NCBI GenBank assembly: GCA_965649825.1
Contig: OZ287695.1
Location: 2,097,288 to 2,161,287, forward strand
Length of the DNA: 64,000 nt
Direction of reading: 5' to 3'
Origin: Penicillus capitatus
Taxonomy: Eukaryota > Plantae > Chlorophyta
Part shown: piece by piece, positions 1,053 through 52,449 of the stretch
Position numbering within the stretch: position 1 is the stretch's first letter
Layout: every line of letters starts with the position of its first letter
Position numbers and translations under genes: made by a program
The notes under the pieces: generated by a model
The model's database searches: none
What the model saw: the letters and a program-made list of their open reading frames with translations, nothing else
Told to the model about the DNA's origin: nothing

Positions 1053-1359
1053 TGTTGTGTTAAGCCAACACGCCCCTAACAATGAGCTCATCTACTTACA
1101 CTTGTGTCGATCTCCAAGCGACAGGTCGTAGGTTCGCTACACCTTCCCATCCACAAATAGACCCGCGGCTCTACGTCACAGATTCCAAGTAGATTCCGGA
1201 ATCTTCGCAGAATATTCCTTCTTTGTTACTTAAAATAAAGTACCCTATAAAAGCTTTGTGAATGTACAGATCTTGTCTTTCGTTTGTAAGGCTTTACGTT
1301 TCAAAAGGTTTACGTGCGCCCACCACTCAAATTGTTCCCATCTAAAACCCTACGCGACA
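1053..1359 (+). repeat. 5' LTR
   Basis: TGTTGTGTTAAGCC...CCCTACGCGACA; no difference from 7718-8024 found by eye. Contains TATAAAA (1246-1252) and TGTAA (1285-1289, the chlorophyte poly(A) signal). Confidence 0.98.
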
Positions 1360-4715: not shown

Positions 4716-4740
4716 GGGACCGGCCTGTTTTTCAGCAGGC
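4706..4740 (+). promoter_or_regulatory. -1 programmed ribosomal frameshift signal
   Basis: A_AAA_AAC heptamer (4706-4712) in correct phase right before the ORF1 TGA; GCCTGTT-TTTC-AGCAGGC stem-loop at 4723-4740; the -1 frame is stop-free from the heptamer into pol. Confidence 0.85.
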
Positions 4741-7708: not shown

Positions 7709-7713
7709 GTGGG
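7690..7713 (+). promoter_or_regulatory. Polypurine tract (imperfect)
   Basis: GAGATTAGACAGAAGATAGGTGGG then CCCA directly before the 3' LTR; overlaps the pol stop codon; TGGGCCCA palindrome at 7710-7717. Confidence 0.6.
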
Positions 7714-7717
7714 CCCA

Positions 7718-8024
7718 TGTTGTGTTAAGCCAACACGCCCCTAACAATGAGCTCATCTACTTACACTTGTGTCGATCTCCAAGCGACAGGTCGTAGGTTC
7801 GCTACACCTTCCCATCCACAAATAGACCCGCGGCTCTACGTCACAGATTCCAAGTAGATTCCGGAATCTTCGCAGAATATTCCTTCTTTGTTACTTAAAA
7901 TAAAGTACCCTATAAAAGCTTTGTGAATGTACAGATCTTGTCTTTCGTTTGTAAGGCTTTACGTTTCAAAAGGTTTACGTGCGCCCACCACTCAAATTGT
8001 TCCCATCTAAAACCCTACGCGACA
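7718..8024 (+). repeat. 3' LTR
   Basis: Direct copy of 1053-1359, followed by the TSD copy ACAG at 8025-8028. Confidence 0.98.
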
Positions 8025-24691: not shown

Positions 24692-27175
24692 ATGAGGAAG
24701 GTGGCTCTGGCGAAGGAGTGCTTTCCAAGCATCGTTCTTCGTAGACGTGCACAGCAGAGAGGAAATCTCCACGAGCAGCTTTCCAGCATGAAAGAGCATC
24801 GTCGAAACTGGCACCCGTTAGCGACATCAGACGATAGACGCTTCGGGGAACAGCCATCCGTCGATGCGATCCGCGAACCATTGGCCACGAGATAGACAGA
24901 ATAAAAATGTTGACATTATAGCGCATTCTGGCATTAGCTTGCCGCCATACTTGCACCCATGAAACGCGAAAGAAGCGATGCCGTCGTTTCTTCTGAGGAA
25001 ATAGGAGAGAGAAGAGAACGGGAAAGACAGATCCTGAACTTGCGCCATCACCTGGTGGCGACTTTGAGAGATCACGTCTCAGGAAATAGTGCCTCCTATC
25101 AAGAGTGCATCTGCTAACAGGCCACATGTATCTATCGCCAGATGTATGTTTGTGCAGATTGGTGCAGGAAGTCCATGTGCTGTTGCATCATGTCGCGACA
25201 CTAGACTGTCCAGCAGAGCAGCGCAAATTGCAGATTCTCTTGTCTTGTTTGGCAGGCTGCGCCTCAGAAATCGTTTCCAAACACCACAGTGCGCTCTGCA
25301 ACGCGATTCTCGACATTCCATTCATCACGCAGCCAAAGGTAGACCAGACACCACTATGCATCGTCAGATGTGTCCCTCTGGTCATGTCATCTGTAGACAG
25401 TGCAGAAGGCCTTGGTGGATGTCTTCCTGAACTGGATGCTGACAAACTGCTCGTTGATTCCGGGATGCTTGAGCTCATTGGCGATCTCATTGGTTCCATT
25501 CAAACCGTACAGCCCGATCAACGATCCATCGGAGAAGTGGACGATGCCTGAGCCATTGGCCGATACCCATCGTCTGATCTTGGATGTCGTCGATCAGGTG
25601 AAGCCAACACGAGACGCTGTCACATCGAAGGCTGGCCTGCTTAGGTCTACGGAATGATTCCGCACGTCGCGTCACAGTTTCTAGGATCGCTTTCCGCAAA
25701 GCAGCCGTTCTGGATGCGGCATTGCGAATCGCACTGTCTCTATCTCAGTGCGATTTTTCAAATCATGAAACGTCCGGTGGGGAAGAATTTTCAGGAGAAG
25801 CTCTGGTCCATGGTCGTTCATCACCTTCTGGATCTCGATGTCAATATCCATGCGAGCGATCTGGATCGCAGTTCTGACTTGGGCGGCGAAGTCGGTCTCT
25901 TTCATTGCGATCTCGGAGATGGATCAAAAGGATCTCCTGCATCCGATCAGCGCACACAGCAACTCGCAACATTGCTCACCGTTATGGACGCAATGATGGA
26001 GATCACGTTGGAGGAACTGGAAAACGGCGTGACGAAAGAGAATCGGGATCAAATGTGGAAGATCATGATGACGCTGTTCGATGCGTTGATGATCACGACA
26101 CACGAAGCGCAGTTTGTGCATTTCCTGATTTTCTACCTCGTTCAGAAGAATCCACTGGAATGGACAGCCTGTTTCATAAGGAGGTGTCTCATCAGAGTGG
26201 AAGATGTATGGACGGCTGCGCCCCTGCGGTCTGCCTACGCTTCCTACGTCGCCAGCTTTCTCTCAAGAGCAAAGTGTGCACCCCATGAGCTGCGGCTTCA
26301 GGGACTGGAAACACTCATGAAGACCTGCGAAGCCTATGCCAAAAAAGAATCCGAAAAGAAGCGAGAGCTCAAGAAATGGACACAGAATCGACTCGCCAAA
26401 GAGAAGACGGCATCTCTGAGTCCCCTTACACAACACGAAGTGCGTCATGGATGACACGTGCCTGTACCGAACAGACACTCTGTATGGCAGGTTTTCTACA
26501 CATGCATGCAATCGTTGATGTATCTGCTGTGTTATGTGACACCATGGCATCTCCGCAAGGGCAATAGCACTTACGGCGGCCACGTCTCCCATTTGGATCA
26601 GGTGCATCACTCAGTCATCGTGCCGTTTGCTGAGACGTTGTTTTTCAGTTAAAGACACTGATTCAAGGAAGACTGAGTCCACTGCTCTACCATCCTTTGG
26701 ATCCACTGAATCGCATTGACCCAGCCATTGCTGTTCAGTTTGCTGATCTCGTTGAGCAATTGAGCATCATCCGGTGTCGACATCTGATCGATATGGTGAC
26801 GATCTGACGATGCCACGACCAGCAAAGTTCATCTCTGTGTCTGCAGACTCGGTTGTATCAAGACAAGAGCAAACTTCGTGCGTCTTTTGCTTTCGATCCT
26901 TATTGTCTGGGTCGATCCAGGTCGTATCTGAAACTGGAAGAAACGTACATAACGTGGAACGCAGTGAAGCGCTGTCTGCCAGACCAAGACACCGTCATCG
27001 AAGGTCGATTTCCAAGTAAGACAACCATGTGCCCCGCTCCTCTGTCAAACGGCGTTTAGATGAGGAAGAATTGCTGGAAGGGTGTTCTTGGGAGGACGAT
27101 TTTTCTCCGGGACATTCCCTTTGCGCATCGGCGCCCATTCGGCGAGGCGATCCAACAGTTGACGGAATTCTTTGA
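24692..27175 (+). CDS. RRN3: RNA polymerase I initiation factor RRN3 (multi-exon)
   Basis: QFVHFLIFY, RSAYASYVASFLSRAK, VFYTCMQSLMYLLCY, FAFDPYCL motifs in a HEAT-like helical protein. Confidence 0.88.
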
Positions 27176-27262: not shown

Positions 27263-30200
27263 TCACGGCCGCCATTTCTGCGAAACCTTTGAGCTCTCGT
27301 CTCGCCGCAGAAACTCCGCGAGTCGTGGCGAATACTTCCCACTCTTCATTCTCTGTCTGGCCACCACATCATGGGCAGCCGTTTTCGAAGACAGATGCTT
27401 GCTGTGCTTTTCCCGGTTCTCCTTCACCACGCCACTCGCCCAATCGCCATACCGATTCAGTAATGTACTGTTCTCGTGGCGCAGCGTATCTGCCTTCTGT
27501 CTCATCACAGCATAAGCATCTTTGGCCGATTGGGCTTCGGAAACGGCACGTTCGATCGATAGATGTGAAGCAGAGAGATCCGATTCGAGGTGTTTGTTGC
27601 GCTCGACACTGCGCTCGAGATTCTTTTGGATGCATTTGCGGGAGGCCTCTTCGGCTTCCATAGCAGCGACGAGATCCTCGATCATTTTGCTTTTCTCTCC
27701 TAGTTTTAGCTTCAACTCAGCAACGGCGTTTTCTTTCTCTTGGAGATCTCGCCGTCTCTGCGTCTCATTCTCTCTCTTTTCTTCCATCGTCGACTGGAGT
27801 GTCATTTCTTTCTCGGCCACGAGGGCAGACAGTCGCGAGATCTCTTTCTTTATCACTGTGATTTTGTCCTTTGCCTCCACGAGCTGCTCCTGAGCACGTG
27901 CCGCTTCATCGTGACTCCGTTCTTTCTCAGCCGTCGACTCCGAGATCTAACACCGACAGAAACTGTCTCTATGCAAGCTCGAGATCCAAAGCACTTGGCG
28001 TTTGAATTTTTCTCTCTCTGTGTTATGCGATTCTTGCGTCGCCTTGAGCTGACCCGTGAGCGAACGTAATGTCTCGCTGAACTGATGGATCTGAGCATCC
28101 CTCTCGGCGATCTCCTCCGACGATCTCTCAAGAACACTCGTCTTTTCATCCTCACTGACCTCCAACTGCATCGCACCGCTTCAAATGATCATCTCTGAGC
28201 CACTCTATTTATCACCTTTTTTCTCAGATGTTTGATTTCTTCCCTGAGATGCACACATTGTAAGGCCTCTCGCTGCAAATCCTCTTCCATCTCCGTCATC
28301 CTCTCGCCATAAGATGCCGCGTTCTGTTTCAGGCGTTGTTCTTGGAAGGAAAGCTGATCCTACAGCAGACAACGCACGCGTGAGCTCGTTTGGCACATCG
28401 CGGTCATAGCTCAGTGGGAGAGCGTCAGACTGAAGATCTGAAGGCCCCGTGATCGATCCACGGTGACCGCATCCTTTTCGTCACGCACTTTTGTCCTTTT
28501 CAATTCCTCCTGCCCGTCTTCAACTTCTCGCGTCTGCTGTTTGCAACGCCCCTCCACCAAACTCAGTTCGTTCTTGAGATTCGACCATTTGGCATGGAGA
28601 GACTCCTTCTCTCGCAGCGTCTCCTCTTGCACGTCACTCAGAGCAGCGACCTCCGTCTGAACCTCCTTCAATGATTTCTTGAGGTTACGGATCTCAGCCA
28701 TATATGCTGTCTCCTTCTTCTAAACACAAACCGTAGAGCTGCACATCTATGGATCGACAGTGCAGATCTCGAAGTTATACTTTACTGTCATGTTTTATGC
28801 CTTCGAGCTTTGTCTTGGTCTCGGCAGACCATTCCGATTCCTTCCGCTTGTGATCGTGAACCGACATCTCGTGCTTCTCTTTGAGTCGGACGTGTTGTTT
28901 CAGCAAATCTCGATGCGCTTCTCTCTCGTTCTTTAAAGACTGTTTGAGATCCTTCGTCTCCTCTTCGAGATGGATCTTCTCTTTTTGCAGAGATGCTGTG
29001 AGAGATTGAGAGGCTTCGACTTCACTGGCCAATCGCTTGGCCTCACTCTTTTCCCCAGAAATGATGTGACATTCTTTTACGTTGGATGCTATTGTACCTG
29101 ATGTTTGGCAACGAGGAGACGTTCTTGGCTCAGAAAATCGTGGACGGTGTCGATCTCTTCCTCCATGACGTTTCTTCGCTCTTCGCTCGATTCCAGTTCC
29201 CGTTGAAGACGGCAGCATCGTGCCTCACTCTCTTTGCTTCGTTCTAAACAGTGTGATGCAGCTTCATTTTAAGTAAGAGGCATCTTCTCACACCTTTTTC
29301 CTGAGCTTCTCCGGACTGTCGTGCCTGGCACTCTTTTGTTAATTGTTGTGCTTTGAGTGTCAGTGCATTGACAGTGCCTTCCAAATACGTGCTTCGATTG
29401 CTGAGCTGCTCACACTCTTTCTTGATTTCGTGAAGCCTGAATCAAACTCTCTTCACAGAAGGTGATGCAAATTGGCGCCGACTTCTGTGTGCGTTCCTTA
29501 AGCATCGCGCCGCTTTCTGCCAGCTGTTCCGTGAGATGTCGACATGTGACATGCTGCCGCTGCATCTCCTCTGCTTGTCGCGTTGCCTGTTCTCTGATCT
29601 GATCACATTCTTTTTCGACCAAGACCAAACGATCGGTCTTCGCTTTATCATCTGCCTCGAGCCTCAGCCTCAGACAATGCTCATCGCGAAGCCTGTAACG
29701 ATATGCACATCTTTCTCTGCGACGGCAAGAATCCGGTTTGCAGCTGTAGACCTTCTTTGCAGTTCCTTGAGACGGTCATCGTGTGTCTTCAGTGCCGCTC
29801 TCAGCGCCGTCTGTCCCTTCTCCATTCAAACACGCTGACCGTTCGTTTGCGATGATCACCTCCTCTTCTGCTTTTGCAGAGAGATCGTTTGTCAACGTCT
29901 GCAGATCCTGTTCAAACCGTGCTCTTTCCTGCATCACACAGAGCCTCTCTCACGATGAGCGTCCAAATGCCTGCAATGGTCGAGAGACCGTTTTTTGATC
30001 CGTTTTCAGTCGAAGGAGCTCTTTTGCCAATGCCTCGTTCGCCGTTACCAGATCCTGCATCATTAGAGATCCCATCTCCTGTATGCCGCACACCAGAGCC
30101 TACTGAAATCGTATTGTCTTTGTAAGCATTCCATCGATTTTGCAGGTCCTTATCAAAGGCTCGCTGTCCTCCTTTTAACAGATAGTTTTTTGGATGGAAG

Positions 30201-32030: not shown

Positions 32031-34244
32031 ATGCTAGACGAGCGAGAAGGAGAACGATCGCTGTTGGAAGAGACCACGCCATCTCAGCGTCGCCATGGCA
32101 TGCGTGTTACTTTCTCTGTGCGCCTTGCCTCGACGTCTTTTCACTCAAGTCGACATTCGCTTTGCAGAATCTCGAGTACTTTCTTCCTTCCAACATCAAA
32201 CGTGGAGAAACGGCCACTGTCCTGAAGAAGATGTCCGGATATTTCAACCCGAATGAAATGACAGCTCTGGTCTGACATGATCTCACCGGAGACAACAACA
32301 CGACGTGAGGACTGCTTTGTGCTAGATGGGCCCTAGCGGATGCGGAAAATCGATTCTGATGGATGTGTTGGCCGGAAGACGTACCCGAGGAACACTGCAG
32401 GGAGCGATTCGATATGATGGACGAACACCGTCACAAGGATTCCTCCACTGGTGTACGGGATATGTCGAGCAGTTCAGCACCTTGATTGAGAACTTGACCG
32501 TGTTCGAGATGCTCATGTACACAGCAGAACTGAAAGTAAAACACCGACGGACCTCGGCAGCATTTGATCCGTCCTTGATTCAGCGCCCGTTGGATGAATC
32601 CTTGTCGAGCAAAGAACAGGCCGTGATGGATTTGATCGACCGTTTGGCACTGACATCGTGTAAAAACAGCCGAATCGGAGATCCGCACTTGGATCGGGGC
32701 ATCTCCGGAGGAGAGGTCACTCGATGCTACACAATAGGGGTCGCCTAGAGAGTGTGTATGGCGGGTAGGGAAAGAGAGTCAACATCGGCATTGGATTGAT
32801 CACGAACCCCCGAGTGCTGTACATAGACGAACCTGTTTCTGGACTCGATTCCTACACAGCAAATGAGGTGAGGCCATGGAATGGAAAAGAGAAGAGAGTT
32901 GGAACGTTTGCTGCACACAGGTGACGGAACTGATCCATAGTCTCGCCTGCGATGGAACCACCGTCTGTGCCACCCTGCATTCCCCAACGCCCTTCACCTT
33001 TCGCCTCTTTGATCGCATTCTTCTGCTCGTTCAAGGAACCATGGTCTTCTTCGGCGGACGAGGTGTCACATCACACGCCGCCAATGAGAGAGGCTGCGAT
33101 CGATGTGAATGTAGAGGAGATCGTTGGGTACTTTGAGAGTCTGGCTGTCGGGTCACGTCATCCCTCCCAGAGTGTTGCTGAATGGTTGACGGAGATCATC
33201 GTCAAGGCAGACCAGGAAGACACAACGCCTGTACTCATTGAAGGCTATCGGCATTCTCAGCTACGTACACAGACAGAAAGCCATACCACGATGTCCTCCC
33301 CCTCTGCCGAGATGCGAGAAGAGAATGGACAGATGGTGCAAGAGAATATCTACAAGCAGAAACCCTTCTGGTTTTCTCTGAAGATACTGATCCGCTACCG
33401 TGCTGTCAAAAATCTCTCGAGTCTTTCTTTCTGGTTGACTCGGAGCATCGACAAGAGCGTCATCGTCCTTCTGCTCTGTACACTCTACTACAGTCTGGGA
33501 GATAACATCACGCCCAACAACTACTTCGAGCTTTCGGCATTGATGTTCATCTGGTCAACATTCTCAGCAACGGGCGCTCTGGTTTATGTCCCTCGATTGG
33601 TGGTCGAACGATGGGTGTTCTATCGAGAGCAGCGCGATGGACTGTATCCTGTGCTCTCGTATTTTCTCATCAAGATCCTCGAAGAGATGATGGTGGCTGT
33701 GGTGCTGTCCGTGCTCTTCTGCTACATTCTGTGGTCTTGCATCCATCTACAGGGCAGTCTCCTACGATTCATACTCACCTTCTTTGGCATGTTTGCCTCC
33801 AGCATTCTACTGTCCTTATTCTTTGGGGCAATTGCGCCCAACATGGACATTGCTAATGCTCTATTCCCCTGCTATATGATGACCCTTATGTTCTATGCTG
33901 GCTATCTGCTGTTGCCTGACGACATACCGAACTACTTGGTCTGGTATTCAAAACTGGATTTCCTTAAGTACTGCTACGGTGCGCTGATGGCAAACCAATT
34001 CAAAAGCGATGTCAAACTGGAAGGAGCAGCAATCTACTTCACACGTAAGCATCTCTGCCATCTCGAATGGTCCATCCACTAAGTGTGATTGTGTGTCTAT
34101 CCAGCGAGGGATTTTCTGGACAACCTTGGTCTGGGCGATTTCGACGAAGATTGGTACGTCGGAATTCTCTATCTCTTTTCGACCGGCTTCGGTATCCTTG
34201 CATACTCGGCCATGCGTTTCGTTAGATACGAGCGCAAGAAATGA
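32031..34244 (+). CDS. ABCG half-transporter (NBD-TMD)
   Basis: Walker A GPSGCGKS, signature ISGGE, DEPVSGLDS, H-loop LHSP, ABC2 membrane domain with ERWVFYREQRDGLY. Confidence 0.95.
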
Positions 34245-38926: not shown

Positions 38927-41900
38927 TCACTGTGTCTTGCATTTCAGTTTATCTGAAAAATCGAACGCTTCTCTCCACAGAGCCTCCACTGCATTCTCCA
39001 CCGTAGCGTTGTCCAAGAATGGCTCCGTCGAAGGCACGATCCGAACTTCACTGACATCTCGGATATTCGAGTATCGACCCTGCGCCAGACGACGCGTATA
39101 CTGCTTGGCCTGTCGAATGACCAGTTGGTAAGGAACGCCAAATCGCATCTTGTGCTTTGGATATTTGAATATCGTGTAATGCTCCATGTAATCGACATCT
39201 AGATTCTCACTCTTTATGTACAGCTCATTATTCTCCCGAATGCCAATGGCATCGATAAAATCTTTTGCCAGTGCATGATCCTCGAGCTTCGTCACCTCAC
39301 TCACCTGCCAATCAAAATAAAATATCTCCGGGGCGGATGAAGATAGCAAACCTGTGTTTTGAGCATGAATCGAATATCGGATTCGCGTCCCTCCACTTCG
39401 TCATGGTGACAGACACATTGTCGTTTGACATCGCTGACGATCCAGCGAATCGGCGCCGTTTCGATGCCGACAAATTTCAGATCGGCATCGTAGCGCGCCG
39501 TCACGACACCCGTTCCTGTCTGCGCCACCACTTTGACGCCTTCTTCCTTATCGCCTTTGTACTGGTCTTCGGGAATATCTGTTAACGAGTTTATCAATCT
39601 CTGTTTCAGAAAGTCGCGTTCTTCATCATCGAAGAAGACAGAAGCGACAAACGACGTGGAAATGAATCCATCATTGGCACGTTCTCCTCTAGGCACACGG
39701 CGAAAGTGACCTGAATCGAACATCGGATCCAAGAAACGTGATTTTCTTCGTTCCAGAGCCTTGAGCAAATCTTCGGTGGTCAGATGCGTGGCATCTTCCA
39801 CAAAAGACTGGGGAGGACTCACAACGTAGCTTCGGCCAAACTTGACTTGAATCTCGCATGGACCGTTGACTTCTGGCGAGTACTGTCTCTGAAAGTGGGC
39901 CAGTTGACGTCTGAAATGCTGTCGGAACTGATCAAAGTTGTCGGTATTGGTAGGATCCACCGCCGAAGTGGCAGGACGATCACGCAAGCGAACGACATAG
40001 AGCCTCTTGTAATCATGCTGTGGATACTTGTAGCCTAAGTAAGGCTCGAGGCGAATGGAGGCATGGGTACCAACTGCCGTTTCCACTAAAAGATTGTGCG
40101 CACCTGTCACATCTTTTGTGCCCCTAGATACACGAAACACCGTCACCTCTTCACCTCTTCAGCCCTATCTTACCGCACGCGCAGTGTCCGGCCCGTTTTT
40201 TGTTGTTCATCAGCCTGTGCATTGAGCATCTCGATCTGTTTCTCTAACAGATAGAGCTCTGCCTCCGTTCCGACGCCTTTGACGATCTTTCCCGGATTCA
40301 AAGCGCTCATTCGAGACTGGACATCGACCCATGCTCCAGATCTCTGATGCAGCATCCTGGTGAGGCCATCCTCATCGCCAACCACGAGACGCGACGCCTC
40401 GAGTTTGATAAAGAAAAGACGTTCGATGGGAACTTTGCTGAGCAAGACGGATGCGTTGACGTGGAGAGACAGGCGATGGGAGGCTTTCTCCATTTCGGCC
40501 GAGAGCAGAGTCAGCATATCAGTCCTTGCTTCATCATTCCATCTCTCCACCTTTAAGGCCTGTAAAAATGCCACAGACATGATCACGTCCCTAATTAGCT
40601 GCTGTGGCAGACTTGTGAGAGTTCTGGATGGAGATCGGCTGGAATCTGAGCCGTCCCCTGTTTCATGAAGGTACACAGGAGACGTCCAACTCGACCAGAC
40701 TCTCCTTCCCACGGCTGATCGCTGATCTCGTCGTTTCGATTGGCTGTTAGGTTTTGATGCAAGCTCTTCCATTCGTTGTCCGTGCCAAAGCAGTCGTTGT
40801 GCAGCGGATCTTCAAAAAATCTCTTGGCTGCTTCCAAGAACTGCCGTGGAGGGATTGGATGCAATTCGCCAGCCTTGAGACAATGATCGATGAACATCAG
40901 TGGCACCAAGTAGTCTGGCAGGAAGAAAACACGACCGCCCACCAATCCTGTCGCCATCATCCATGTGAACAGGATTCTGAGCGCAGGGAAGAGCCACTGG
41001 TGCTTGAAGAAGTACTTCTTGATCACAATCCACTTAACGACTTCGGCTGGATTGGCAGAGAGCCGAGCCTTTGTCTTGGGCAGCCTCTTGAAGACACGAA
41101 CTCTGAGGTGACATTGCTCAGTGTTTAGGTTTTGTGCCGCGAAAAGAGAAGAGCATTCGGATTTCACCCTGTCCAACCGCGTCAACTGATCCTCTTTGCT
41201 CAGGGCGATGTTTTCTGAATCATACACCTGCCGTCTCTTTTTCATGACCAGAATGCACACTTCTCCTCTCTGATCATCGAACAGCAGGAGATGACTGGCA
41301 CCAAAAAGCACGCAGAGAGCAACGCGCTGACAGGTCTCTCCCAGAAAACGTGCCAACATGATATGATGTTCGTAGGCTTTATACAGTTTGCTACACAGCC
41401 ACACATGACGTTCCTCAGGAGAGAGAAAGACAGACGACTTACTCAATCGTCCCGTTGAAAATTTCTTTCACGCTGTCCGAGATTTCGGAGTAAATTGAAC
41501 GCTGCGGTCTCTGTTTGGATGCTGCGTCGCTATAGATCTCGGCCAGAAGATCCTTCAAGATCCAAGGAAAGCTCAAAAAATGTTGCATCTCGTTGCCTAT
41601 GTGCACGGATCGCATATCTCTTCGGCAAAAGGCATACGACTTACCCACAGAATACTGATCTCCGTAACAAGAGGCATAGGCAGCATAGTACCAAGCAGAA
41701 GCTTTCTTCTTCTCCTCGACTCTGCCATCTGCCTCATCCAGTCGCGAGTCGGTGAAAAAGATCGCTTTGTATTTCGTCTTGATCTTCTCCAACATAAACT
41801 TCACGTTCTTCCTCACGTCATCCAGTTCGCTTTCGAGTCTCGGGTGGTACGTCGAGATGACACCCGACCACATCTCAGCCTCCGTCTCAATGCCGTACAT

Positions 41901-44900
41901 GCGCATGATCGTCAGGATCTCTTGGTTGTACTGTTTGAAGATCCGGTGTGCCTCAGTGATGTAGTCTTTATATCCCTCAACCTTGAAGGCCTCGTCTGGA
42001 TGTGGTCGGCTGCTCTGCTCAGCCGTTGCTGGATCGGTGGTGGCCATCATGTACTTGTTGCATTCGCGAAACATCTGCCCCAGGACATTCATGGACGGAT
42101 ACGACGGTTTGTCGACTTTCATCATGAAATCTGGATACTTAGTGAGTTCAGATTTGATATGCGATGGAAGATGTGTCCAGCTGCCAGTCTTTGGAGCATC
42201 GACGGCCTTTGCATGCAGCTCGGAAAGATCCAAACAGATTTCGCTCTCGAGTCCTCGCTGATCTGCCAGAGCCTTGTGCGTGTTGTCGATCATACCTAAC
42301 GTATCGTTCTCGATAAAAGCGCAGATGTAATCGGCAATGTGGCGCAGCCCGATCTGATCGGGTCTCTCCTCCTGCTTTGCTCCAGTGTAATCCATGGGCT
42401 CCTTGATCGGGATCGTTGGCAAGAGGCGCATATCCCAGATGCAATGATACTGATCTCCATCTAAATCCGATCCGGATAGTTCATTGGGATGCGGTCGCGG
42501 TCCTTTCTGAGGAAAAACGACACAGTCGACAAGATGACGCAGCTGTGGAATATCTTTTCCTTCAAGGGTGCGAACATCTCCTGGATGAATGCACGGGTTC
42601 TTCATGATGACGATCGTGGAGGTAATGACACGGCGAGCGACACCCGGTTTGTCCAGGTCTTCCGAAATCTGGATGAAAACCTGACCGCTCTCTAGCACCC
42701 CTTCTTCATCCATCACCCCAATCAACACACGGCCCTTATCTTCATCCAGACGGACTCGGGATCGCTCTCTCATGTCTTGCATCTGAAATCTACGCCAGAT
42801 GAAACGGGATGCATCGTAAGAGGAGGACGTTGCGATGTGAAGGATCGGACCGATAGCTCGCTTTCATGATGTTGCGAAAGAATGGATCGGAAGTGAACTG
42901 GAATCGCACTCGTTGAAGCCGATTGATCTCTCTGGACACTGTTGCCTGAAGAGCCTTCACTGCCGCATCCTCCTCCACAAACATCTTCCCCATCTGGACA
43001 ATCTTGTTCTTCAACAGGTCCATGAAGACATCGTCTCCCACTCCCACGTTGCTCAGCAACATGATCACCTGTATTGCCAGAAACGAAGCTGCATAGAAGC
43101 TGATGTGACGGGTTTTTACCTGTTGATTGAGATGCAGAGGAAGCGGACGTGAGAATTCGAGCACTTCGATACCTTTGCTGTCGGAAGGATACTTCAGCAT
43201 GCTATGTCGCACCACCAGATCAGAGGTATAGCCCTTTCTTCTGAAGAAATCATCATCCCAGACAGACACCATACCTTTGCATCCGCCGATTCTGATCTGA
43301 AAGGCAGACGGGATCGACGAATGCTCCAAGCACTGTTTCTCCTTCACCTAATACCAACAGTCATCGGCCGGCGGTGCAGCTCAGGGCAGTTTACTTTCAA
43401 CGCCAGAGAGGCTGAGATCAATCCAACACCATCGGAGAAACAATAGTCGCCAGCTTCCACATCCGATTCCGTATAGTAGTGCGCCACAGAGACGGTGTGT
43501 ACGGATGTTGAAAAAGCCAAACCCAGTCGCGACATATAACGTGGCACTTGCGTAATCCCTGAAGATCAGACATACCAGCCGTTATGACAACACACGTGAA
43601 AAAGCAACGCACGCGTGAGATCTCCAATTCCGTCGCGTATCTTTTCGGCGATGCAGCATCCATCATCTCGGATGAAATAAGAAGAATGCGCGCGTATCTG
43701 ACTGTTCGATGCTGCCAAGTAGACATACTGATGTGGTCCGATCTTTATCCCATTCATCAAGATGTCGCGGATTCGATTGGTGATATGCGGCAGATCTCCA
43801 TAAAGACTCGTCAGATTGTCGCAGTTCTCATCGCGAATGCCAACGCGAATGAAGATCTCTGCATTGTACTCACGCACGATGCGATTCGTCTAGCAACACA
43901 CTCATCACACAGCGGCCACGATTTGAAGCCTCTGTCCTACCTGGATCAGATCTGGTTCGTAGAAACGTAGCGAGGTGGGCGTGATGATAATTCTCTTCAT
44001 GTACGCGTGATTTGAACTTGGTGGCCTGATCTCTGTATCAGGGATGGCGGATTTCCATGCACGTTCCATAAACTGAACGGGATCACAGAAGAGCTTCTTG
44101 GACATCACTCTTGCAAGCTCGTATATCGTTCGAATCGCTTCGTTCTCTTGCATGGAGTTCAGAATTTGATAGAATCGATCATCCATACGTTCCATAACGA
44201 ATCCAGCCGAGGAAGTGAGACAACGCATGGCATAGTGCACTTCGGGATTCTGGCTGTGGGCAGAGCACTTGGTAAGATCCAGCCCCTCTTCGTGTCCGAG
44301 AAAGGGCGCTGTACCGAAGGTGGTCTGCATGGAGGTGAAGTAGACGGTCACTCCAGAGGATTCCAGCAGCTTCAACACTTCACGTACTCGGTGATCGATG
44401 AGATTGTGCTGCGTAGGAGCTCGTGGATTCGGTATTTCCAGTTTATAAGTGAAGCAGTTGGCAAAAACGTGACAGCTGTTTGGCTCGCCATACCCATAGA
44501 CACGCTGCGACGTCTCTCTGCCTTCGTTATCGGACTGCGACATTCGACTCAAACGGGGTGTTTGCGAAAAAGTGAGATAAAGAGTGAGAACAGAATCTTC
44601 TGTATTGGCGTTCTCCTGAAAATCCACCACGGCAAAATCGCGCAGATCTGCAAAGGATGCTTCTATTTGCAGCTCGTCGTTCACCGTGATGACAATTCGG
44701 TCGAATCCTCGTTCCAATCGCAGACTGCTGGCTTGGCCCAGTCGCATCTGCTGAACAAACGTTCGCTGCCATTTGAGCGATCCCACGAACGTCTGATGCA
44801 AACTCAGCCTCAACGCTGTCGACCTCGGAAAGTAGCTCCGTCGATTCAGCAAACTCGTCCAGATATTGAACAGCTCGGAATGGAAGATGGGCGACGTGAA

Positions 44901-47892
44901 CAGACCCAGGATGCTCTTCTCAAAGCGATGGGCGTTTTCTCGATCGCTGTTTTCGTTGAGCGTCAGCAAAGCCTCCGGAAAATAGTGCGTGCCGACGGCG
45001 TTCTCAATCTTCAGCTCTTTGTCGATCCATTCGTGGATCTGGACTTCGGGATGGGTGATTTCGATCGCCTTTTTGATATGGTCTCTGGCACGTTGATACA
45101 TTTTGTCGTCCTGAACGAAGATGGCGAAGCGCACGGCGACTTCGACCTTCTCCGATTCGTCCTCGTCGAGAAATGGAAGCTCTTCTTGACTGGCATCCAC
45201 ATCGACTTGCTTCATGATATCCAGCATCTCCTGCAGTTCTGCTTCTGAGATTCCGTTCGCCTGTGGCCCTGCCTCCTCTTTCTGAATGATCCTCCTTCCG
45301 GTATCTTCCTCCAGATCCAGTGGCACCTTGCTGTGGGATGTCATCTGATCGAAATGATACCTGTTCTTCATCATCAGCTGGATCACATCGGCCTGTGTCT
45401 GCATACAGCTCAGGTATAACTGCTGCCTGTTCTTCTCGGCCTCGCTCTTGCATATGATATAGAATTTGCCATCGGCTGCTCGACAGGCGCGTCCTCGACT
45501 CTGAATAAACTGCCGCAGGTTTTCAGGCGCTTTCATACGGAGCACCATATTGCAGGAAGGCACATCGAGACCTTCTTCCAGAATGGTCGTGGTGACCAGC
45601 AGTTTCGTCTGCCCACGTCTGAAATCGTTCAGAATCTCTTGTTGCTCTTCGAGGCTCAGTCCATCCCCACAAATACCTCTGCCCACAATGACTTGAGGAT
45701 TGAGCGCCGTCTGGATAAGATTCAGCTGCGCAAAACAGCTACAGAGTTTGCGTGCCGTTCGACGCATATCCACGAACACCAGAATCCGCGTATCTTTCCT
45801 GTGCTCTTCATAGTGCTCTTGGATCATTTCGATCATTCTCTTGCACTTGTTGGAAAGGAGATGGTGTTTATAGACATCGCTTTTGGACTCCCGTTGGACC
45901 TTCTGAAAAAGACTCGCGTAGAGAGGCTGACCGTCAAAACTCTTCTTGTAACTAAACACACAAAACGTGTTGCCATGTAGAAGTGATCTTGTCTCGTAGA
46001 GGATGGTATGTACCCATACAGAGCTTCTTTCTTTCTTTGCTCCTGTCCTGGTGCCGGATCTTCAATACTGTAGAACACCTTCTTCAGCTGTTGCATCGCC
46101 ACGTCATGACCGATCACATTGTTGACCTCATGAACTGCCAAGATCTGATTCATGTGATCTCTCATCGCATAGCTACGCAAAGAGAGAGCATCCATCGCTC
46201 ATGGCCCTGACTGTTGTCAGAGACGCACATACCCATAGTAGATATCCTCTGTGCGGCTACGGAATCGCTCCTTGTCGCGAGCTTCGTCCAACTGACCTTC
46301 AATTTTTCTCAGTTTTCCACGAAGTTTGTTGGTATCGACCTCGCGATCGTCTCCCGTCAAGAGACCCTCCAACGAACCAAACAGCGGGGCAATATCTATC
46401 AGACGATGCTGTGTCGCTCGAGTCACTTCACGCATGTAGTCATCCAACTGTTGCTTGAACTCAAACTCTTTCTGACCAGGATCGACAATGAACGCCCAAT
46501 CATGCGTATGTCGCATGCCGTTGTCATACGGATCGTTTTTGCAAGGGAAGCAAGGATGGCAATGTAGCCGCATACCCATCTCCCTAATGTCTTTCTCAAC
46601 TGACTGCGCTGTTGCCGTGCTCTCTGCATTGTCCAGAGGAGATGCCGTCATTCCCATGATTAGAGGTCTCGAGGACAGCTGGACATTTTTATCGAGCACT
46701 CGGCCAAGGAGCTCTGCATAGGGACTGTCTCCCTTTGTCTCGTGCGCTTCGTCCAAAACCAAACAGCAAAGATCCTCGACCCTTACCGTGCTGATCTCCA
46801 TCATTGCGTTCATACAGGCGCACGTACTGACTAGTATATCGTACTGAAATTCGCCAATGATCTGCACCGAGTGTGTCAGGTCGCTTGGAAAACAGTCATT
46901 GCGAGAGATCGCACTTTGAGATTCTTCCTTCTCTGGTCCGGATGCATCTGGCCGAAGACGGTGACGACTTTGGCAGCAGAGAGTTCGGTCTTGAGGACAT
47001 GGGATTGCTGCCCGACGAGATGATTGGTGTTGACCACAAAGGCTGCCACTTTGTGTGGATTGATATGTAGCATCGCTCTCAAGACGCCAGCCGCCACCAG
47101 TGTCTTGCCTGATCCTGTTGGCAGACATAGCAGACTGTTCTGCTTGAGGCAGAAAGTCAACATCTCCATCTGCAAGACGCCATCTCACACAAATGCGAGC
47201 GTCACCTGTCACATCACAGACTTGATAATTGCGCATCTTCGTTGCTGTGAGATGCTTCAATGTGTCATCGGATGTCCTGTCGACATCGACGAGAAACGTT
47301 GGATGAATAGGTCGACCATCACGGCTGTAAAACTTCCGGCCTGCCTAAACGTCACATCACTGGCTCTAAATGATCATTCGCATGCCATGACAGACAGACC
47401 CGTCTCAAAAAGTCCTTCTGCGAGATACGGGATACACCACATTCTACCAGTGCCGGCAGCACTTCTTTCCACTTGTCCTCGTATCTCTCCAGGCCATTCG
47501 GAAACTCGAACACGACGTATTTTGGACGGATCTCGTCGTAAGCATTGGCCGTGATGGTATCCGCTAGACAGACGCCGATCTTTCCTTCGCAGTTCCTGAC
47601 GACGCGCATTGGCATCTGACGTTTAGTAGGAGCGAGCATACCTGCAGTGTAGCTTCCAACCAAAATCGCCCTTTCCCGTTTCGTGGTTTTCGCGTCGTTC
47701 GGTCGTTTTGCTCCGCTTGAGTGCGATCTGTATTGGCAAGAGGCATCAATCAGGCTTTGCAAAAAGACGTCTCGATGTTGAGGGCACTTCGGGAACGACG
47801 ACGAGTTTGTTTTCGTTTCCCAAAATCGCGAGCTGCTCAAACGTGTACAGCTCTGCGCGACACTGGCGACATTTGATCTTGCCAGGCGACAT
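38927..47892 (-). CDS. RDR: Multidomain RdRP: RLR-CTD, DExD/H helicase, RDR, NTase-like, KH-like, CYTH/TTM-like (about 17 exons)
   Basis: Consecutive ORF pieces join in phase across about 45-62 nt GT-AG introns. RNYQ, LPTGSGKT (47101-47124), LDEAH (46742-46753), MTASP, EEGLDVPSC, QSRGRA; SDGVG, QIRIGGCKG, KNPCIHPGD, SGSDLDGD (DLDGD at 42453-42467). Confidence 0.9.
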
Positions 47893-49419
47893 GAGTGAAG
47901 CGACACAGACGAAGACGAACGCACAAACACCTTAAGACACTCAAGAGGTGTCGCTGTCACGGTACAGTACCAAGCGGATGCCGGACAAAAGAACGGCCGC
48001 CTGTTCAATCGCTGATGGCGACCCTGTCCCATCGCCCTCTCGCTGGACAAGCGACCATCCACCAACCTCGCAGCGTCAACGGACGGAGAGACCGGTCGCA
48101 TTGCGAGGATCAGGAATGAATTGCACACGTCCGATGTTACACTTCGTTCGATGGAGTGATGATGTGACACATCACACTATGCCATTTTCTTCAGCGACAA
48201 GTGACATCGACCATCGCCTTTGCCTAGCCACTGATCTCGGCGATACGTCACTCGATGATATTCCATGCCTTCAAACCTTGACAGAGATTTTCGCCGTGAC
48301 CTCGATGCAAAGAGTGAGATAACGTGTTACCATGATTTATCTTGGGAGCAGCAACATACTGCTGTCAGGGATGGGACGCCCTCTTCTTCAAAAACGTCTT
48401 GATATAGACACGTTCGAACCTCCAACGTACAGCAGCTAGAGAACGGTCACTCATTTGCTGTCAGGCGAAAGAGTGAGACAGAAACGCACTTTTTATCCGT
48501 TGAGATATGAGATGTCCAGGCAGCGCCCATGTCCATCTGTAGACTGCGCATCATACGACTCTGCATCACACACAAGTGAGAATGACACCATTCCGTATCG
48601 CCTGTTGTTGTCACCAGCACAAGGAAGGGACTGGTGCCGAGAAGTCTGTGTCGAATATACAGTGTCGAGTGCAAGAGGATTCTACGCAACATCCGTACAG
48701 CGTTTCTCACTCTTTTGAAAGAGTGACCTGAGCAAAGGAGCACCCGAAGATCCCATCTGTCCAGACAGGATCTTTAAGACACTCTAGCGCGATCGCAACA
48801 TTCCATATGACTCGCAGAAAAGTGTGAGAAAACCTGTTCATTCTTGATCCAAGGGAACAGCACTTTGTAACTCGCCATCACCAAACATGCCATCTACAAC
48901 ATTCCTGACGCGATTCTCACTCTTTATCGTCTCACACTTGAAGGTGTGTCTGCGAAGGTCCATCTCGGATGCGATGTGCATGTCGTATGTGATAGTCCTG
49001 GTAAGCTTTCTCAATGTATAGGTGAATGCGCTCCGTCTGATCTTGCAGTACATGATACTCACTGTCACACTTTTCCATCATCTCACTCTTTATTTCAGCA
49101 GATCGCCAACTTGCATCGCGACCGGATACCTCGAATCCACCAGCGTCGATTCTGTCTCTGCAGCCATGGTCGCAACTTTGGGAAATACAGATCCAGCCAG
49201 TGCGACGACGCTTCATCTGTCGAACGGCCGTTTCCTGACGCCGATGACGGTATACATCGCAGTGCCGTATGGCAGCGCGCATCTCTGTCGGCAGGTCGAC
49301 GATGGGAGAAACGCAGATGTCGCCATGCCCCACGGATCATCATCATTTGCCAAGATCTGTTGCGTTTTGCACGTCGAGTTGATTCGTCTCTGCATCCAAC
49401 CCTCGTCGCTACCATCCTC

Positions 49420-50184
49420 ATGGCGCAGCTTCTCACGTCGTCTTTTTCTTGTGCCGGTCGTCGCGTCGCGACGTCGTCTCTCAAGACAACCCACAACTAC
49501 CGCCGCTCGGCATTCAACGGCAAGGCCCTGCGCAGTACATCCCTCCTCCGACGCGCCGCCGAACGCGGTCGGCTCTCCGTCAATGCCGGGTGCGGGGAGC
49601 ATTCGCCTCAAGTGGGAAACGTTGCGCCAGATTTCGCCGCCCAGGCTGTCTTCGATCAAGAATTCGTCGAGACGACACTCTCTCAGTACCGCGGAAAATA
49701 CGTCGTTCTCTTCTTCTACCCTCTGGATTTCACCTTCGTCTGTCCGACTGAGATCACTGCCTTCTCAGATCGCTACTCAGAATTCTCTGCCCTCAATGCC
49801 GAAGTCCTGGGCGTCTCTGTCGATTCACAGTTCAGCCATCTGGCTTGGATCCAGACAGATCGCAAAGAAGGGGGTTTGGGCGATTTGGCGTATCCCTTGG
49901 TGGCCGATCTCACCAAAGAGATTTCCAAATCCTACCAAGTCCTAACCGAAGAAGGCGTTGCCCTCCGTGGCCTCTTCATCATCGACAAAGAAGGCATCGT
50001 TCAGCATGCCACCATTAACAACCTTGCATTCGGTCGCAGTGTGGACGAGACCTTACGTACACTCCAGGCCATTCAATACGTACAAGAGAATCCAGACGAA
50101 GTGTGCCCGGCTGGATGGAAACCGGGTGACAAGACAATGAAACCGACGCCGAAGGAATCGAAAGAGTTCTTTGCTGCTGTGTAG
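49420..50184 (+). CDS. Chloroplast 2-Cys peroxiredoxin (BAS1-like), intronless
   Basis: [15 protein letters not shown] and EVCPAGW motifs; transit-peptide-like N-terminus from ATG 49420. Confidence 0.97.
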
Positions 50185-50245
50185 AGGGAACGGTGATTTT
50201 TGTAAGATCCGTCGATTGTGTCGTACCGTTTCGTTGGAAGGCACT

Positions 50246-52449
50246 ATGAGGCGTTTACTTGTATACGGCACGTTGCTCATGGCCTCGCTCTGTACGGCCT
50301 CGTCTCCCGAAGACGAACCGTCCGTCGCGAAGCGGTGCGAAGACATTGGCAAAGCGCCAAGAGCGGAGCGATGTCGTTTGGTCCGCAGTCTCTGCTCAGA
50401 GGAGAGTCGCAAAGGGACACTGTCACTGGACTATCTCTCAGCTTACTACTGTCACATCGATGGAAATGGCTACCGTGTGCAATTGCTGTTCTGGACGATG
50501 CTGTGTTTTGTGGGAGCCATCCTGTTTTCTCTCCTGGGCGATACGGCTGAGAAATATTTTAGCCCTGCGCTGACGCAGATTTGCCAACAGGTGCCTAAGA
50601 TGCGACCGAGATTTGCAGGAGTGACCGTTCTGGCATTTGCAAATGGCGCTCCGGATCTTTCTGCGACGATCAATGCGATCAAAACGTGCAAATTTAATCT
50701 TTCCTTGGGAGCGCTGACGGGTGCTGGCATGTTTGTCAACTGTTTTGTGGCGGGATGGATTATTCTGATCTCAGGAGGGGCCAGATGTCGAGGGGCAACG
50801 ATCCGCGATGTGACCACGTATTTTCTGACGATCTTTGGTGTCTTGATGGCATTGCTGGTGCATCGCATGGGCATTACGGTCATCGTCTTGGCCTTTCTCC
50901 TTTACGGTGGCTTTGTTGCCATTGTCTTCGGTGCCGATGAATGGCACGAACAGGGACGCCCCGATTTCTGGTCCAAGCCCATCGGCCGCATCGCCTCCAG
51001 TTTTCGATACGGTGAAACGATGGAGGATGCATGGATGACATCGACGACAGGACCTGTCTGGGCGACCTTCGATGACGACGGCGAGCAGCCCTCTGCCATC
51101 GCTTCCGAACAATTGCTGTTGACAGCGACCCGTGATGAGGAAGAACTCATGAGACGACATCTGCCGACCGTATGGGCACAGCTCTCACCCAAGGAGTATC
51201 GTCAACAGGCTCTGGCCGAGATGGCGGGATCGGATGACGATCTGTACGACTACCCACTTGATGACAGACTGATGGCGGAAGCCACGTCAGAAGGGCCTTC
51301 TCAGATGGAGAACCTTCCAGATGATTCATCTCCTCAGCCTCTTGGCGCCGACGTCATGCCTTTTGAAACGGAACACCCTTCGGAGACCGTACCATGCACA
51401 GGAGGTGCGTCAGGCGATCATCTGTCGCTGTCACAGACAGCGTGTGCGCACAGGTGTGTTTGCACAGTATCCATGGCTTATGCCTATGTGGGCGACGCTT
51501 TTGATGGACGACAAGCCGGACAGGGATAGCATGATTTTGACAAAGATCATTCTGGCAGTGCGTCTGCCGTTCCTGACATTGCAACGGGCAACGATTCCTC
51601 TGACCAGTCAAGAACACTTTTCCAATTTCTGGCTTGTCACCTCCATTGCCCTATCACCCTTCATAGTCCTCATTTACTTTAACTTCTCTGGCTGGCTCAG
51701 CTTCTTCCTGGCTACTCTCCTGGGAATAGTCCTCGCTGGAGCCATCTACTTTGCCACGAAAGGTGATTGCTCTTTCCTGTGTGGATCGATGAGGTCTCCC
51801 TAAATGTGTAGGATCGTCCAGACCACCTGTCTGGTCATTTGGGACGTCGTGGCCAATAGGCGCCTCGCTGATTGCCCTGTACGGATTGGCAATTGGTATC
51901 TTTTGGATCGATATCCTCGCGGGAGAGCTCGTCGATCTGCTGTACTGTGCCGGAACCGTGACCGGAATACCGGAAGCCGTATTGGGACTGACGGTCCTGG
52001 CATGGGGCAATTCGATTGGAGACTTCTTTACGAACAAAACCATCGCCAAAGCCGGCAAAGGAAACATGGCATTGACTGCCTGCTATGCCGGACCCGTCTT
52101 TAACATGCTGATGGGACTGGGACTGGGTTTCATCTCATTCTTTGCCACACAGCATCGGTCCTCCGCCTCCCTTCATGCCGGACCCCAAGTCACACATTTC
52201 TCATACTTCTCACAAAGTGTGAGCGGCTTTCTGTATGACTAGGTGATTCTGGGCTGTATCTGTCTGCTCCTTCATGCAGCCGCCGTGGTCATCATCGGCA
52301 TTCGAAAAGGATTCCGACTTCCCAGCCGTTTCGGATATTTCTCTATGGGTGTTTATCTTGTGTACTTATGCCTTGCTGTTTCGCTTCAGTTCCTCATCGG
52401 AGAGCGAGAAAACGATGATGCCGCTCAATGCTCGGATCTTTCATCCTAA
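50246..52449 (+). CDS. Cation/Ca2+ exchanger (CCX/NCLX family)
   Basis: alpha1 GVTVLAFANGAPD; alpha2 GLTVLAWGNSIGDFFTN, ACYAGPVFN; signal peptide. Confidence 0.93.

Follow-up and report, generated by a model that had tools for sequence, protein, structure and literature searches.

A predicted zinc domain at the N-terminus of a helicase-RNA-dependent RNA polymerase fusion protein in the green alga Penicillus capitatus

The helicase-RdRP gene

A 64,000-nt stretch of the genome of Penicillus capitatus (contig OZ287695.1, positions 2,097,288 to 2,161,287 of the forward strand; hereafter "the window") carries on its minus strand a gene for a large protein whose predicted domains follow one another in the order zinc domain, RIG-I/Dicer-type helicase, full RNA-dependent RNA polymerase (RdRP, with the catalytic sequence DLDGD) and nucleotidyltransferase-like domain, the last without its catalytic motif. 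The subject of this report is the zinc domain, which is specified by the first three exons (Table 1). An earlier note on this DNA had taken it for the C-terminal regulatory domain of RIG-I and MDA5, moved to the N-terminus of the protein. A syntenic locus, L001, lies on a 265.7-kb contig from the European Nucleotide Archive (ENA) that belongs to a related genome, and was reached via a fragment of an open reading frame (ORF). The two loci are ~87% identical across the gene, a value that falls to ~35% just beyond the gene's stop codon (38927), and L001 has neighbors that match those in the window, namely a peroxiredoxin and a Na/Ca exchanger.

Table 1. Predicted features of the helicase-RdRP gene, in window coordinates
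Feature	Position	Strand	Details
Whole gene model	38927..47892	-	19 exons, 18 GT..AG introns (35-129 nt); coding sequence 7,926 nt, protein 2,641 aa
Exon 1, aa 1-35	47788..47892	-	Start codon and first zinc knuckle C8-x2-C11; C8 at 47871, C11 at 47862
Intron 1	47728..47787	-	60 nt, GT..AG; splice sites kept in L001; 4-nt indel; recovered by the comparative gene model
Exon 2, aa 36-64	47642..47727	-	Spacer strands, loop upstream of second zinc knuckle, C63; 95% identical to L001, indel-free
Intron 2	47596..47641	-	46 nt, GT..AG; splits codon R64; GT/AG conserved and 4-nt indel relative to L001; recovered by the comparative model
Exon 3, aa 64-129	47400..47595	-	C66, G71, distal strands, K105-W106, VSRISQKDF
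Intron 3	47345..47399	-	55 nt, GT..AG, phase 0; donor and acceptor conserved in L001
Exon 4, aa 130-170	47222..47344	-	Linker; helicase Q-motif KMRNYQ at its end
Intron 4	47170-47221	-	2-nt indel relative to L001
RIG-I/Dicer-type (duplex-RNA-activated) helicase, aa ~165-700	45407..47239	-	Pfam DEAD, ResIII, Helicase_C; introns 4-7 inside
Eukaryotic RdRP (PF05183), aa 1174-1724	42062..43985	-	Pfam E = 1.2e-147, profile positions 1-582 of 582
Nucleotidyltransferase-like region, aa ~1942-2100	40834..41308	-	Downstream of RdRP; located by alignment with relatives that keep the motif

The helicase motifs GSGKT, DEAH and QSRGRACR start at 47115, 46753 and 45503, respectively, and TASP is present too; the DLDGD of the RdRP starts at 42467 (residue 1589). 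GSGKT, DEAH, QSRGRACR and DLDGD are all intact in the window protein. A Pfam scan of the whole protein placed DEAD/ResIII at residues 165-334 (E = 3.1e-16 and 3.6e-13) and Helicase_C at residues 558-676 (E = 6.6e-23). Searched against the sequences of the Protein Data Bank (PDB), the helicase matched an ancestral Dicer helicase (1e-39) and LGP2 (6e-30), then Dicer, Hef, RIG-I and MDA5. It also matched an MDA5 fragment, chain 4i1s (8.6e-12), which we take to cover the insertion domain of MDA5.

Several observations indicate that the zinc-domain exons share one reading frame with the helicase and the RdRP. Exons 3, 4 and 5, the last of which enters the helicase, are joined by phase-compatible splice sites that both genomes conserve, with no in-frame stop. 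The zinc domain and helicase motif I lie within a single uninterrupted ORF in P0003 (886 aa), P0007, P0016, P0017, P0020 and P0042, and by BLAST the window protein aligns with P0031, P0050, P0065 and P0066 without a break from the zinc domain into the helicase. The earlier note had placed the domain ahead of a helicase of the RIG-I/Dicer type and had named an RdRP as the output, and the Pfam and PDB matches within one reading frame bear this out. It had also considered that these exons might not be spliced to the helicase; the relatives that hold both in one ORF argue otherwise. The ORF-level gene calls of a public collection split the zinc-domain/helicase region (P0001, P0002).

Coding evidence for the first three exons

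The minus-strand ATG at 47892 is preceded by an in-frame stop codon 13 codons upstream. Intron 1 is 78% identical to its counterpart in L001, the exons that flank it are 90-95% identical, and intron 3 is the most diverged segment (60% identity). Introns 1-3 contain 4, 4 and 12 indel columns, respectively; exons 1 and 2 contain none and exon 3 has a single 3-nt in-frame indel, so that indels that are not multiples of three are found solely in introns. Further, exons 1-3 differ from L001 in 27 synonymous and 8 non-synonymous codons, and the differences are distributed 7:5:25 over the three codon positions. Because of this third-position bias, exons 1-3 can be recognized as coding; they are under purifying selection in the proposed frame. 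Chance occurrence of the zinc domain was rejected on the strength of the same bias together with the Pfam E-value reported below.

We infer the splicing of exons 1-3 from the comparison with L001. A comparative gene model, which admitted only GT/AG sites conserved in both genomes and scored synonymous against non-synonymous change, gives introns 1 and 2 at bases identical to those in the earlier note, whose spliced peptide is likewise exact and whose lower bound of 47400 is the end of exon 3. The note was also right that the ORF track hides the domain: exon 1 is a 48-aa ORF, and exon 3 lies inside a 272-aa ORF of another frame. Downstream, joining RNYQ at the end of exon 4 to MEM at the start of exon 5 (which reads MEMLTF...PTGSGKT) restores the YQxE pattern.

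Two other models were rejected. One that minimized intron number alone produced wrong frames and lost helicase motif I, and was replaced by the comparative model. A shorter exon 3 (donor at 47436) was the comparative model's own choice; the additional 36 nt, however, differ from L001 only by synonymous changes (3/3), and their product aligns with an IExR..F motif (VSRISQKDF in the window) of the N-terminal zinc-domain family described below.

A family of N-terminal zinc domains

Protein searches based on a word index yielded no more than fragments of ORFs and a small number of relatives. We also aligned the window domain with the N-termini of P0003, P0007, P0009, P0012 and P0014, and searched the resulting family profile against 1.84 billion representative proteins. 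This search returned 67 proteins at E <= 1e-3, 24 of them at E <= 1e-10. One, the bacterial repeat protein P0076, is a false positive, which leaves 66 genuine relatives. In every one of these the zinc domain is N-terminal; the match begins at residues 1-55, except in P0052, which has an insertion, and in P0002 and P0053, which are 5'-truncated fragments. No animal receptor with a C-terminal match is present among the 67. Ten of the matches are long (1,280-3,411 aa), are colinear with the window protein and share its helicase-RdRP layout. Three of the long members come from the streptophyte alga Mesotaenium endlicherianum (a name read from the JGI code Mesen1), from the chytrid Phlyctochytrium planicorne, whose source record automatically names the protein MDA5, and from the dinoflagellate Effrenium voratum.

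A family hidden Markov model (HMM) built without the window and L001 sequences gave the window domain 27.3 bits (E = 1.7e-10), whereas the C-terminal domain of an animal receptor (P0004) scored 1.9 bits, which is not significant. These scores make the window domain a true, though divergent, member of a separate family of N-terminal domains. The placement of the domain in all 66 genuine relatives, none of which is an animal receptor, also means that the notion of a RIG-I/MDA5 domain that has "moved" finds no support. Instead, from its occurrence in alga, chytrid and dinoflagellate, the N-terminal zinc domain is the standing layout of an old and widespread eukaryotic family, not a relocated animal domain. 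Recent transfer from animals was rejected on account of this taxonomic spread and of the low score of the animal domain.

Fold and sub-family placement

The spliced 144-aa product matched Pfam RIG-I_C-RD with E = 4.3e-7 and 30.6 bits (cutoff 25.6) over profile positions 2-105 of 117. The isolated window domain scored 30.6-31.0 bits and its L001 orthologue 31.9 bits; when the whole 2,641-aa protein was scored, this match (residues 5-109) dropped to 24.6 bits, just under the cutoff. Against Yippee-Mis18 (PF03226), the window domain scored 23.1-23.5 bits, below the cutoff of 26.6, and P0003 was likewise just under it, at 26.1 bits. The four cysteines of the predicted C4 zinc site (C8, C11, C63 and C66) are all invariant (100%) across 44 sequences and align with the cysteine pairs of RIG-I, MDA5 and DRH-3. 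The K105-W106 pair of the window domain aligns with the KW of DRH-3 and RIG-I; in the family, the tryptophan is conserved at 85% and the preceding K/R at 68%. The domain occupies residues 1-115, upstream of the helicase Q-motif (residue 167), and not the position after Hel2 and the pincer that is typical of RIG-I_C-RD.

An AlphaFold2 model calculated from the 44-sequence alignment had a mean predicted local distance difference test score (pLDDT) of 77.3 and a predicted template-modeling score (pTM) of 0.68. The top 17 Foldseek matches to this model were all beta-tent domains (probability 0.97-1.00, E-values of 5.6e-3 and weaker). Among the matches returned, none of which had another fold, were cereblon (5.6e-3), the C-terminal domain of DRH-3 with 5'-triphosphate (5'-ppp) RNA (7.3e-3, probability 1.00), whose rmsd of 3.4 A was the lowest, Mis18 with Mis18-alpha (1e-2 and weaker) and YPEL5; the LGP2 regulatory domain ranked 48th. 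The best TM-scores were those of Mis18 and Mis18-alpha (0.46-0.48 on the query). The modeled fold of the zinc domain is thus a beta-tent, the zinc fold that RIG-I_C-RD, Yippee-Mis18, CULT and MsrB have in common (PMC4287342).

Placement within this fold class is ambiguous between the RIG-I-like and the Yippee/Mis18 branches. In the structural comparison, for which the earlier note had named a best match to Yippee/Mis18/CULT with no RNA-binding surface as a refutation, cereblon, the DRH-3 C-terminal domain and Mis18 rank close together, and the note's reading is neither refuted nor upheld by them. As a single sequence, the zinc domain found no match in the PDB. The family profile matched Mis18 (8e-4), MDA5 (1.2e-3), the DRH-3 C-terminal domain (6.4e-3) and Mis18-alpha (0.01), followed by LGP2 and the MDA5 C-terminal domain (0.04) and YPEL5 (0.05), with MsrB and cereblon weaker. 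The extent of these matches differed. Those to isolated or full C-terminal-domain chains of RIG-I-like and DRH proteins extend to at least profile position 116, through the KW at 108-109 (one MDA5 chain ends at 103), whereas no match to Mis18, Yippee, MsrB or cereblon in this search passes position 102. In an HHalign comparison that was unbalanced, with five RIG-I-like/DRH C-terminal domains against two Mis18 sequences and no true Yippee, the family aligned with the former over the whole domain, KW on KW (probability 90.6%, E = 1.3e-6, 105 columns), and with the latter over 82 columns (probability 72.7%, E = 3.2e-5). The PDB matches that reach the KW and the HHalign scores tilt the placement, so that the RIG-I-like/DRH type is mildly favored over the Yippee/Mis18 type on the basis of the full-length profile-profile match and the KW motif. 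The zinc-domain family is related to both groups. The RIG-I_C-RD identity proposed in the earlier note therefore stands in part: it is the best Pfam match of the window domain, but the sub-family is ambiguous when all members are considered.

The nucleotidyltransferase region

In an alignment with relatives, the region downstream of the RdRP has lost its catalytic signature in the window: it reads LFGASHLLLFDDQRGEVCIL instead of FGS..SDLDL, and the third Asp is absent. The window and L001 both have FGAS..RGEVCIL without the third Asp; relatives keep FGS..SDLDL..D, and P0031 and P0065, with DxN, are intermediate. The whole-protein Pfam scan gave no match in this region of the window protein. 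Downstream of the RdRP in relatives, Pfam MTPAP-like_central was matched at 41.2 bits in P0058, which matches NTP_transf_2 as well, at 30.4 bits in P0050 (cutoff 27) and, just below the cutoff, at 26.0 bits in P0061. All three relatives that were scanned for a nucleotidyltransferase palm domain (P0050, P0058 and P0061) carry it. The homologous region of the window protein looks like a conserved pseudo-enzyme domain. By these matches, the combination of helicase, RdRP and poly(A)/(U)-polymerase-like nucleotidyltransferase in one ~2,600-aa chain in P0050, P0058 and P0061 amounts to a single-chain counterpart of a complex of the Hrr1-Rdp1-Cid12 type. We found no description of the nucleotidyltransferase fusion or of the N-terminal zinc domain in the literature covered, from which subscription papers were absent.

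Discussion

The explanation that we prefer, and to which we would assign a probability of somewhat under 60%, is that the product of exons 1-3 is a beta-tent zinc domain with four cysteines, ~115 aa long, that serves as a conserved N-terminal module in an old eukaryotic family of helicase-RdRP enzymes, that this module handles RNA together with the helicase, and that the window copy is a derived one. Proteins of this family would consist, in order, of the beta-tent domain, the RIG-I/Dicer-type helicase, the RdRP, a poly(A)/poly(U)-polymerase-like nucleotidyltransferase and a C-terminal extension. The parts of an RNA interference (RNAi) amplification complex, such as Hrr1-Rdp1-Cid12 in Schizosaccharomyces pombe or DRH-3 with RRF-1 in Caenorhabditis elegans, would thus be united in one chain. 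The zinc domain and the helicase may act together as an RNA-handling or regulatory module, in which the zinc domain could hold the end of the template or of the 5'-ppp product of the RdRP, like the C-terminal domain of DRH-3. In the window copy, the basic loop appears eroded and the nucleotidyltransferase catalytically dead, but the helicase and RdRP motifs are intact. For these reasons the window protein probably represents a derived form, one that can still copy RNA but whose RNA-end contacts are weaker or changed.

The proposal of RNA-end binding draws on DRH-3. This protein has a preference for double-stranded RNA (dsRNA) with 5'-ppp, which marks the products of RdRPs, and RRF-1, with which it interacts, is an RdRP; the lysines that bind 5'-ppp lie in the loop that connects strands 5 and 6, immediately ahead of the second zinc hairpin (PMC8464030). 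Immediately ahead of the second zinc knuckle, the zinc-domain family carries a conserved basic cluster, KKKK (57-74% K/R over four columns), which by region corresponds to the DRH-3 lysines (K988-K993). The family domain is also basic overall (median net charge +5, pI 8.9). The cluster and the charge fit nucleic-acid binding, without proving it.

Several results count against the preferred explanation, and they concern both the sub-family and the window copy itself. Among family members, Pfam (E <= 0.01) reports Yippee-Mis18 in 29 of 44 (best E = 1.2e-7) and RIG-I_C-RD in 21 of 44; Mis18, not MDA5, is the top single PDB sequence match of the family profile (8e-4 and 1.2e-3); and the HHalign comparison had the imbalance described above. 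Cereblon heads the Foldseek results, in which no match reaches E <= 1e-3, and the AlphaFold2 model is of low confidence within residues 77-100 (77-84 and 97-100), where the window copy departs from the family. The window copy has a net charge of only +1 and a pI of 7.6, and no more than 2 of 43 relatives are less basic. It has TGKG in place of KKKK, V in place of a K/R that is 88% conserved (position 33) and I in place of a conserved R (position 121). It also has IL where the family has FY. It retains the four cysteines, G71, E35, F93 and K105-W106. Since most of the family's conserved basic residues are replaced and the charge is near neutral, no RIG-I-type basic pocket is evident in the window protein, in answer to the earlier note's call to inspect one; this judgment was made on the sequence. 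The case for sensing of RNA 5' ends by the zinc domain, itself an argument from analogy, is accordingly weaker for the window copy than for its relatives.

A doubtful alternative that nevertheless retains appreciable weight is that the zinc domain is a protein-protein module of the Yippee/Mis18 type, which dimerizes the enzyme or docks a partner and makes no contact with RNA. Yippee-Mis18 is the commonest Pfam match in the family, Mis18 is the best PDB sequence match and has, with Mis18-alpha, the best Foldseek TM-scores, and the window copy is nearly uncharged; the Yippee domain of Mis18 is an oligomerization module (PMC4818781). The window domain itself, however, scores below the Yippee-Mis18 cutoff and above that of RIG-I_C-RD, and the Mis18/Yippee alignments end before the KW segment that the family has in common with DRH-3 and RIG-I. 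Most family members are strongly basic and carry the KKKK loop, and the zinc domain always adjoins a duplex-RNA helicase.

It is considerably less probable that the window copy itself detects 5'-triphosphate or blunt dsRNA ends as a genuine sensor of the RIG-I/MDA5 type, derived from an animal C-terminal domain and relocated to the N-terminus. The Pfam score of the isolated domain, the KW motif with the full-length HHalign match to the C-terminal domains of RIG-I, MDA5 and DRH-3, and the place of RNA-bound DRH-3 among the best structural matches would all accord with such an identity. Descent from the animal domain is made unlikely, however, by the N-terminal placement throughout (none of the 67 matches has the domain at its C-terminus, and none is an animal receptor), by the 1.9-bit score of the animal domain against the family HMM and by the presence of the N-terminal layout in Streptophyta, Chytridiomycota and Dinophyceae; the erosion of the basic loop in the window copy also speaks against such a sensor. 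Finally, the division of the region in public ORF-level gene calls (P0001, P0002) would be expected if exons 1-3 were a separate small zinc-protein gene, or non-coding DNA, that merely lies upstream of the helicase-RdRP gene. We consider this scarcely credible in view of the conserved, phase-compatible and stop-free splicing through exon 4 in both genomes, the relatives in which one ORF spans the domain and helicase motif I, the BLAST alignments that pass directly from the one to the other and the third-position bias that marks the exons as coding.

The preferred explanation, a beta-tent module acting with the helicase, can be set beside known systems. The C-terminal domain of RIG-I-like and DRH proteins (PF11648; DRH-3, PDB 6M6R) resembles the present domain in its four-cysteine site of two CxxC hairpins, its beta-tent fold and its KW near the C-terminal end. 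It too is attached to a RIG-I/Dicer-type helicase, and DRH-3 likewise has an RdRP as its partner and binds the 5'-ppp products of RdRPs. In contrast, that domain follows the pincer at the C-terminus, whereas here the domain is N-terminal to the helicase; the present family occurs outside animals, the animal domain barely registers against its HMM and the window copy is without a clear basic pocket. The Yippee/Mis18 (PF03226) and cereblon CULT domains have the beta-tent zinc fold, the same CxxC...CxxC spacing and comparable sequence and structure scores, but the window domain lies below the Pfam cutoff and the alignments are limited to the first ~95 positions, short of the KW segment. Yippee, Mis18 and CULT domains are not known to occur attached to helicases. 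They serve in protein-protein or small-ligand binding (PMC4287342, PMC4818781).

The RdRP complexes Rdp1-Hrr1-Cid12 of S. pombe, Rdr1-Rdn of Tetrahymena and RRF-1/EGO-1 with DRH-3 of C. elegans bring together RdRP, helicase and non-canonical nucleotidyltransferase activities. The same three activities appear to be combined in one chain in the scanned relatives. There, they would form a covalent fusion in place of separate subunits, and the window's nucleotidyltransferase lacks catalytic residues. Fusions of helicase and RdRP are known from Dictyostelium (RrpA-C), peronosporomycete oomycetes, Hydra and Nematostella; their helicases reportedly group apart from those of Dicer, in a clade of their own (PMC4791657). 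These proteins share with ours the core of DEAD/Helicase_C followed by RdRP. PMC4791657 mentions neither an N-terminal zinc domain nor a C-terminal nucleotidyltransferase.

According to PMC4287342, animals alone have a sensor domain of RIG-I-like receptors that can be detected. In the present family, a related zinc domain is a constant N-terminal part of helicase-RdRP fusions in at least three eukaryotic supergroups. With the addition of the nucleotidyltransferase, the three scanned relatives would contain the whole RNAi amplification complex in one chain. If the zinc domain binds RNA ends, the family offers a concrete and testable candidate source of the RIG-I-like ability to sense RNA ends, as well as a simple single-protein system in which to study the coupling of helicase, RdRP and tailing. 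The window copy, which is partly degenerate in appearance (a neutral zinc domain and a dead nucleotidyltransferase), would provide a natural comparison case. A broader conjecture, which we hold to be unlikely, is that the pairing of a beta-tent domain with a RIG-I/Dicer helicase is ancestral to eukaryotes and arose first for RNAi amplification, in a single-chain helicase-RdRP-nucleotidyltransferase whose beta-tent domain gripped the 5'-triphosphate end of RdRP products, and that the C-terminal domains of animal RIG-I-like proteins and nematode DRH proteins descend from this N-terminal domain by rearrangement. If this were true, animal antiviral RNA sensing would be re-used RNAi-amplification hardware.

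Surrounding sequence

The identity of the helicase-RdRP protein to proteins other than its L001 orthologue is no higher than 25-32%, suggesting that its lineage has been little sampled. Head-to-head with its gene, with the start codons ~1 kb apart, is a gene for a 2-Cys peroxiredoxin (48946-50184, plus strand), a neighbor that is kept in L001; the Ser/Thr/Arg-rich N-terminal extension of this peroxiredoxin suggests organelle targeting. ORF fragments on the plus strand at 25654-26454, 32952-34082 and 50171-51529 match the RNA polymerase I initiation factor RRN3, an ABC-2 transporter and a Na/Ca exchanger, respectively, and are ordinary housekeeping neighbors.

The plus strand at 1314-7708 has a pair of long open frames, of 1,133 and 977 aa, with matches to the domains of a gag-type aspartyl protease, a reverse transcriptase and an integrase (zinc-binding and core). 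This segment looks like an apparently intact long terminal repeat (LTR) retrotransposon of the Ty3/gypsy type, and it coincides with a strong positive AT skew at 2001-8000. The sole Rfam/ARAGORN match in the window is a tRNA-Phe (GAA) at 28400-28471 on the plus strand; AT and GC skew are both strongly negative in the stretch around it (28001-30000). The window as a whole is ~50% GC.

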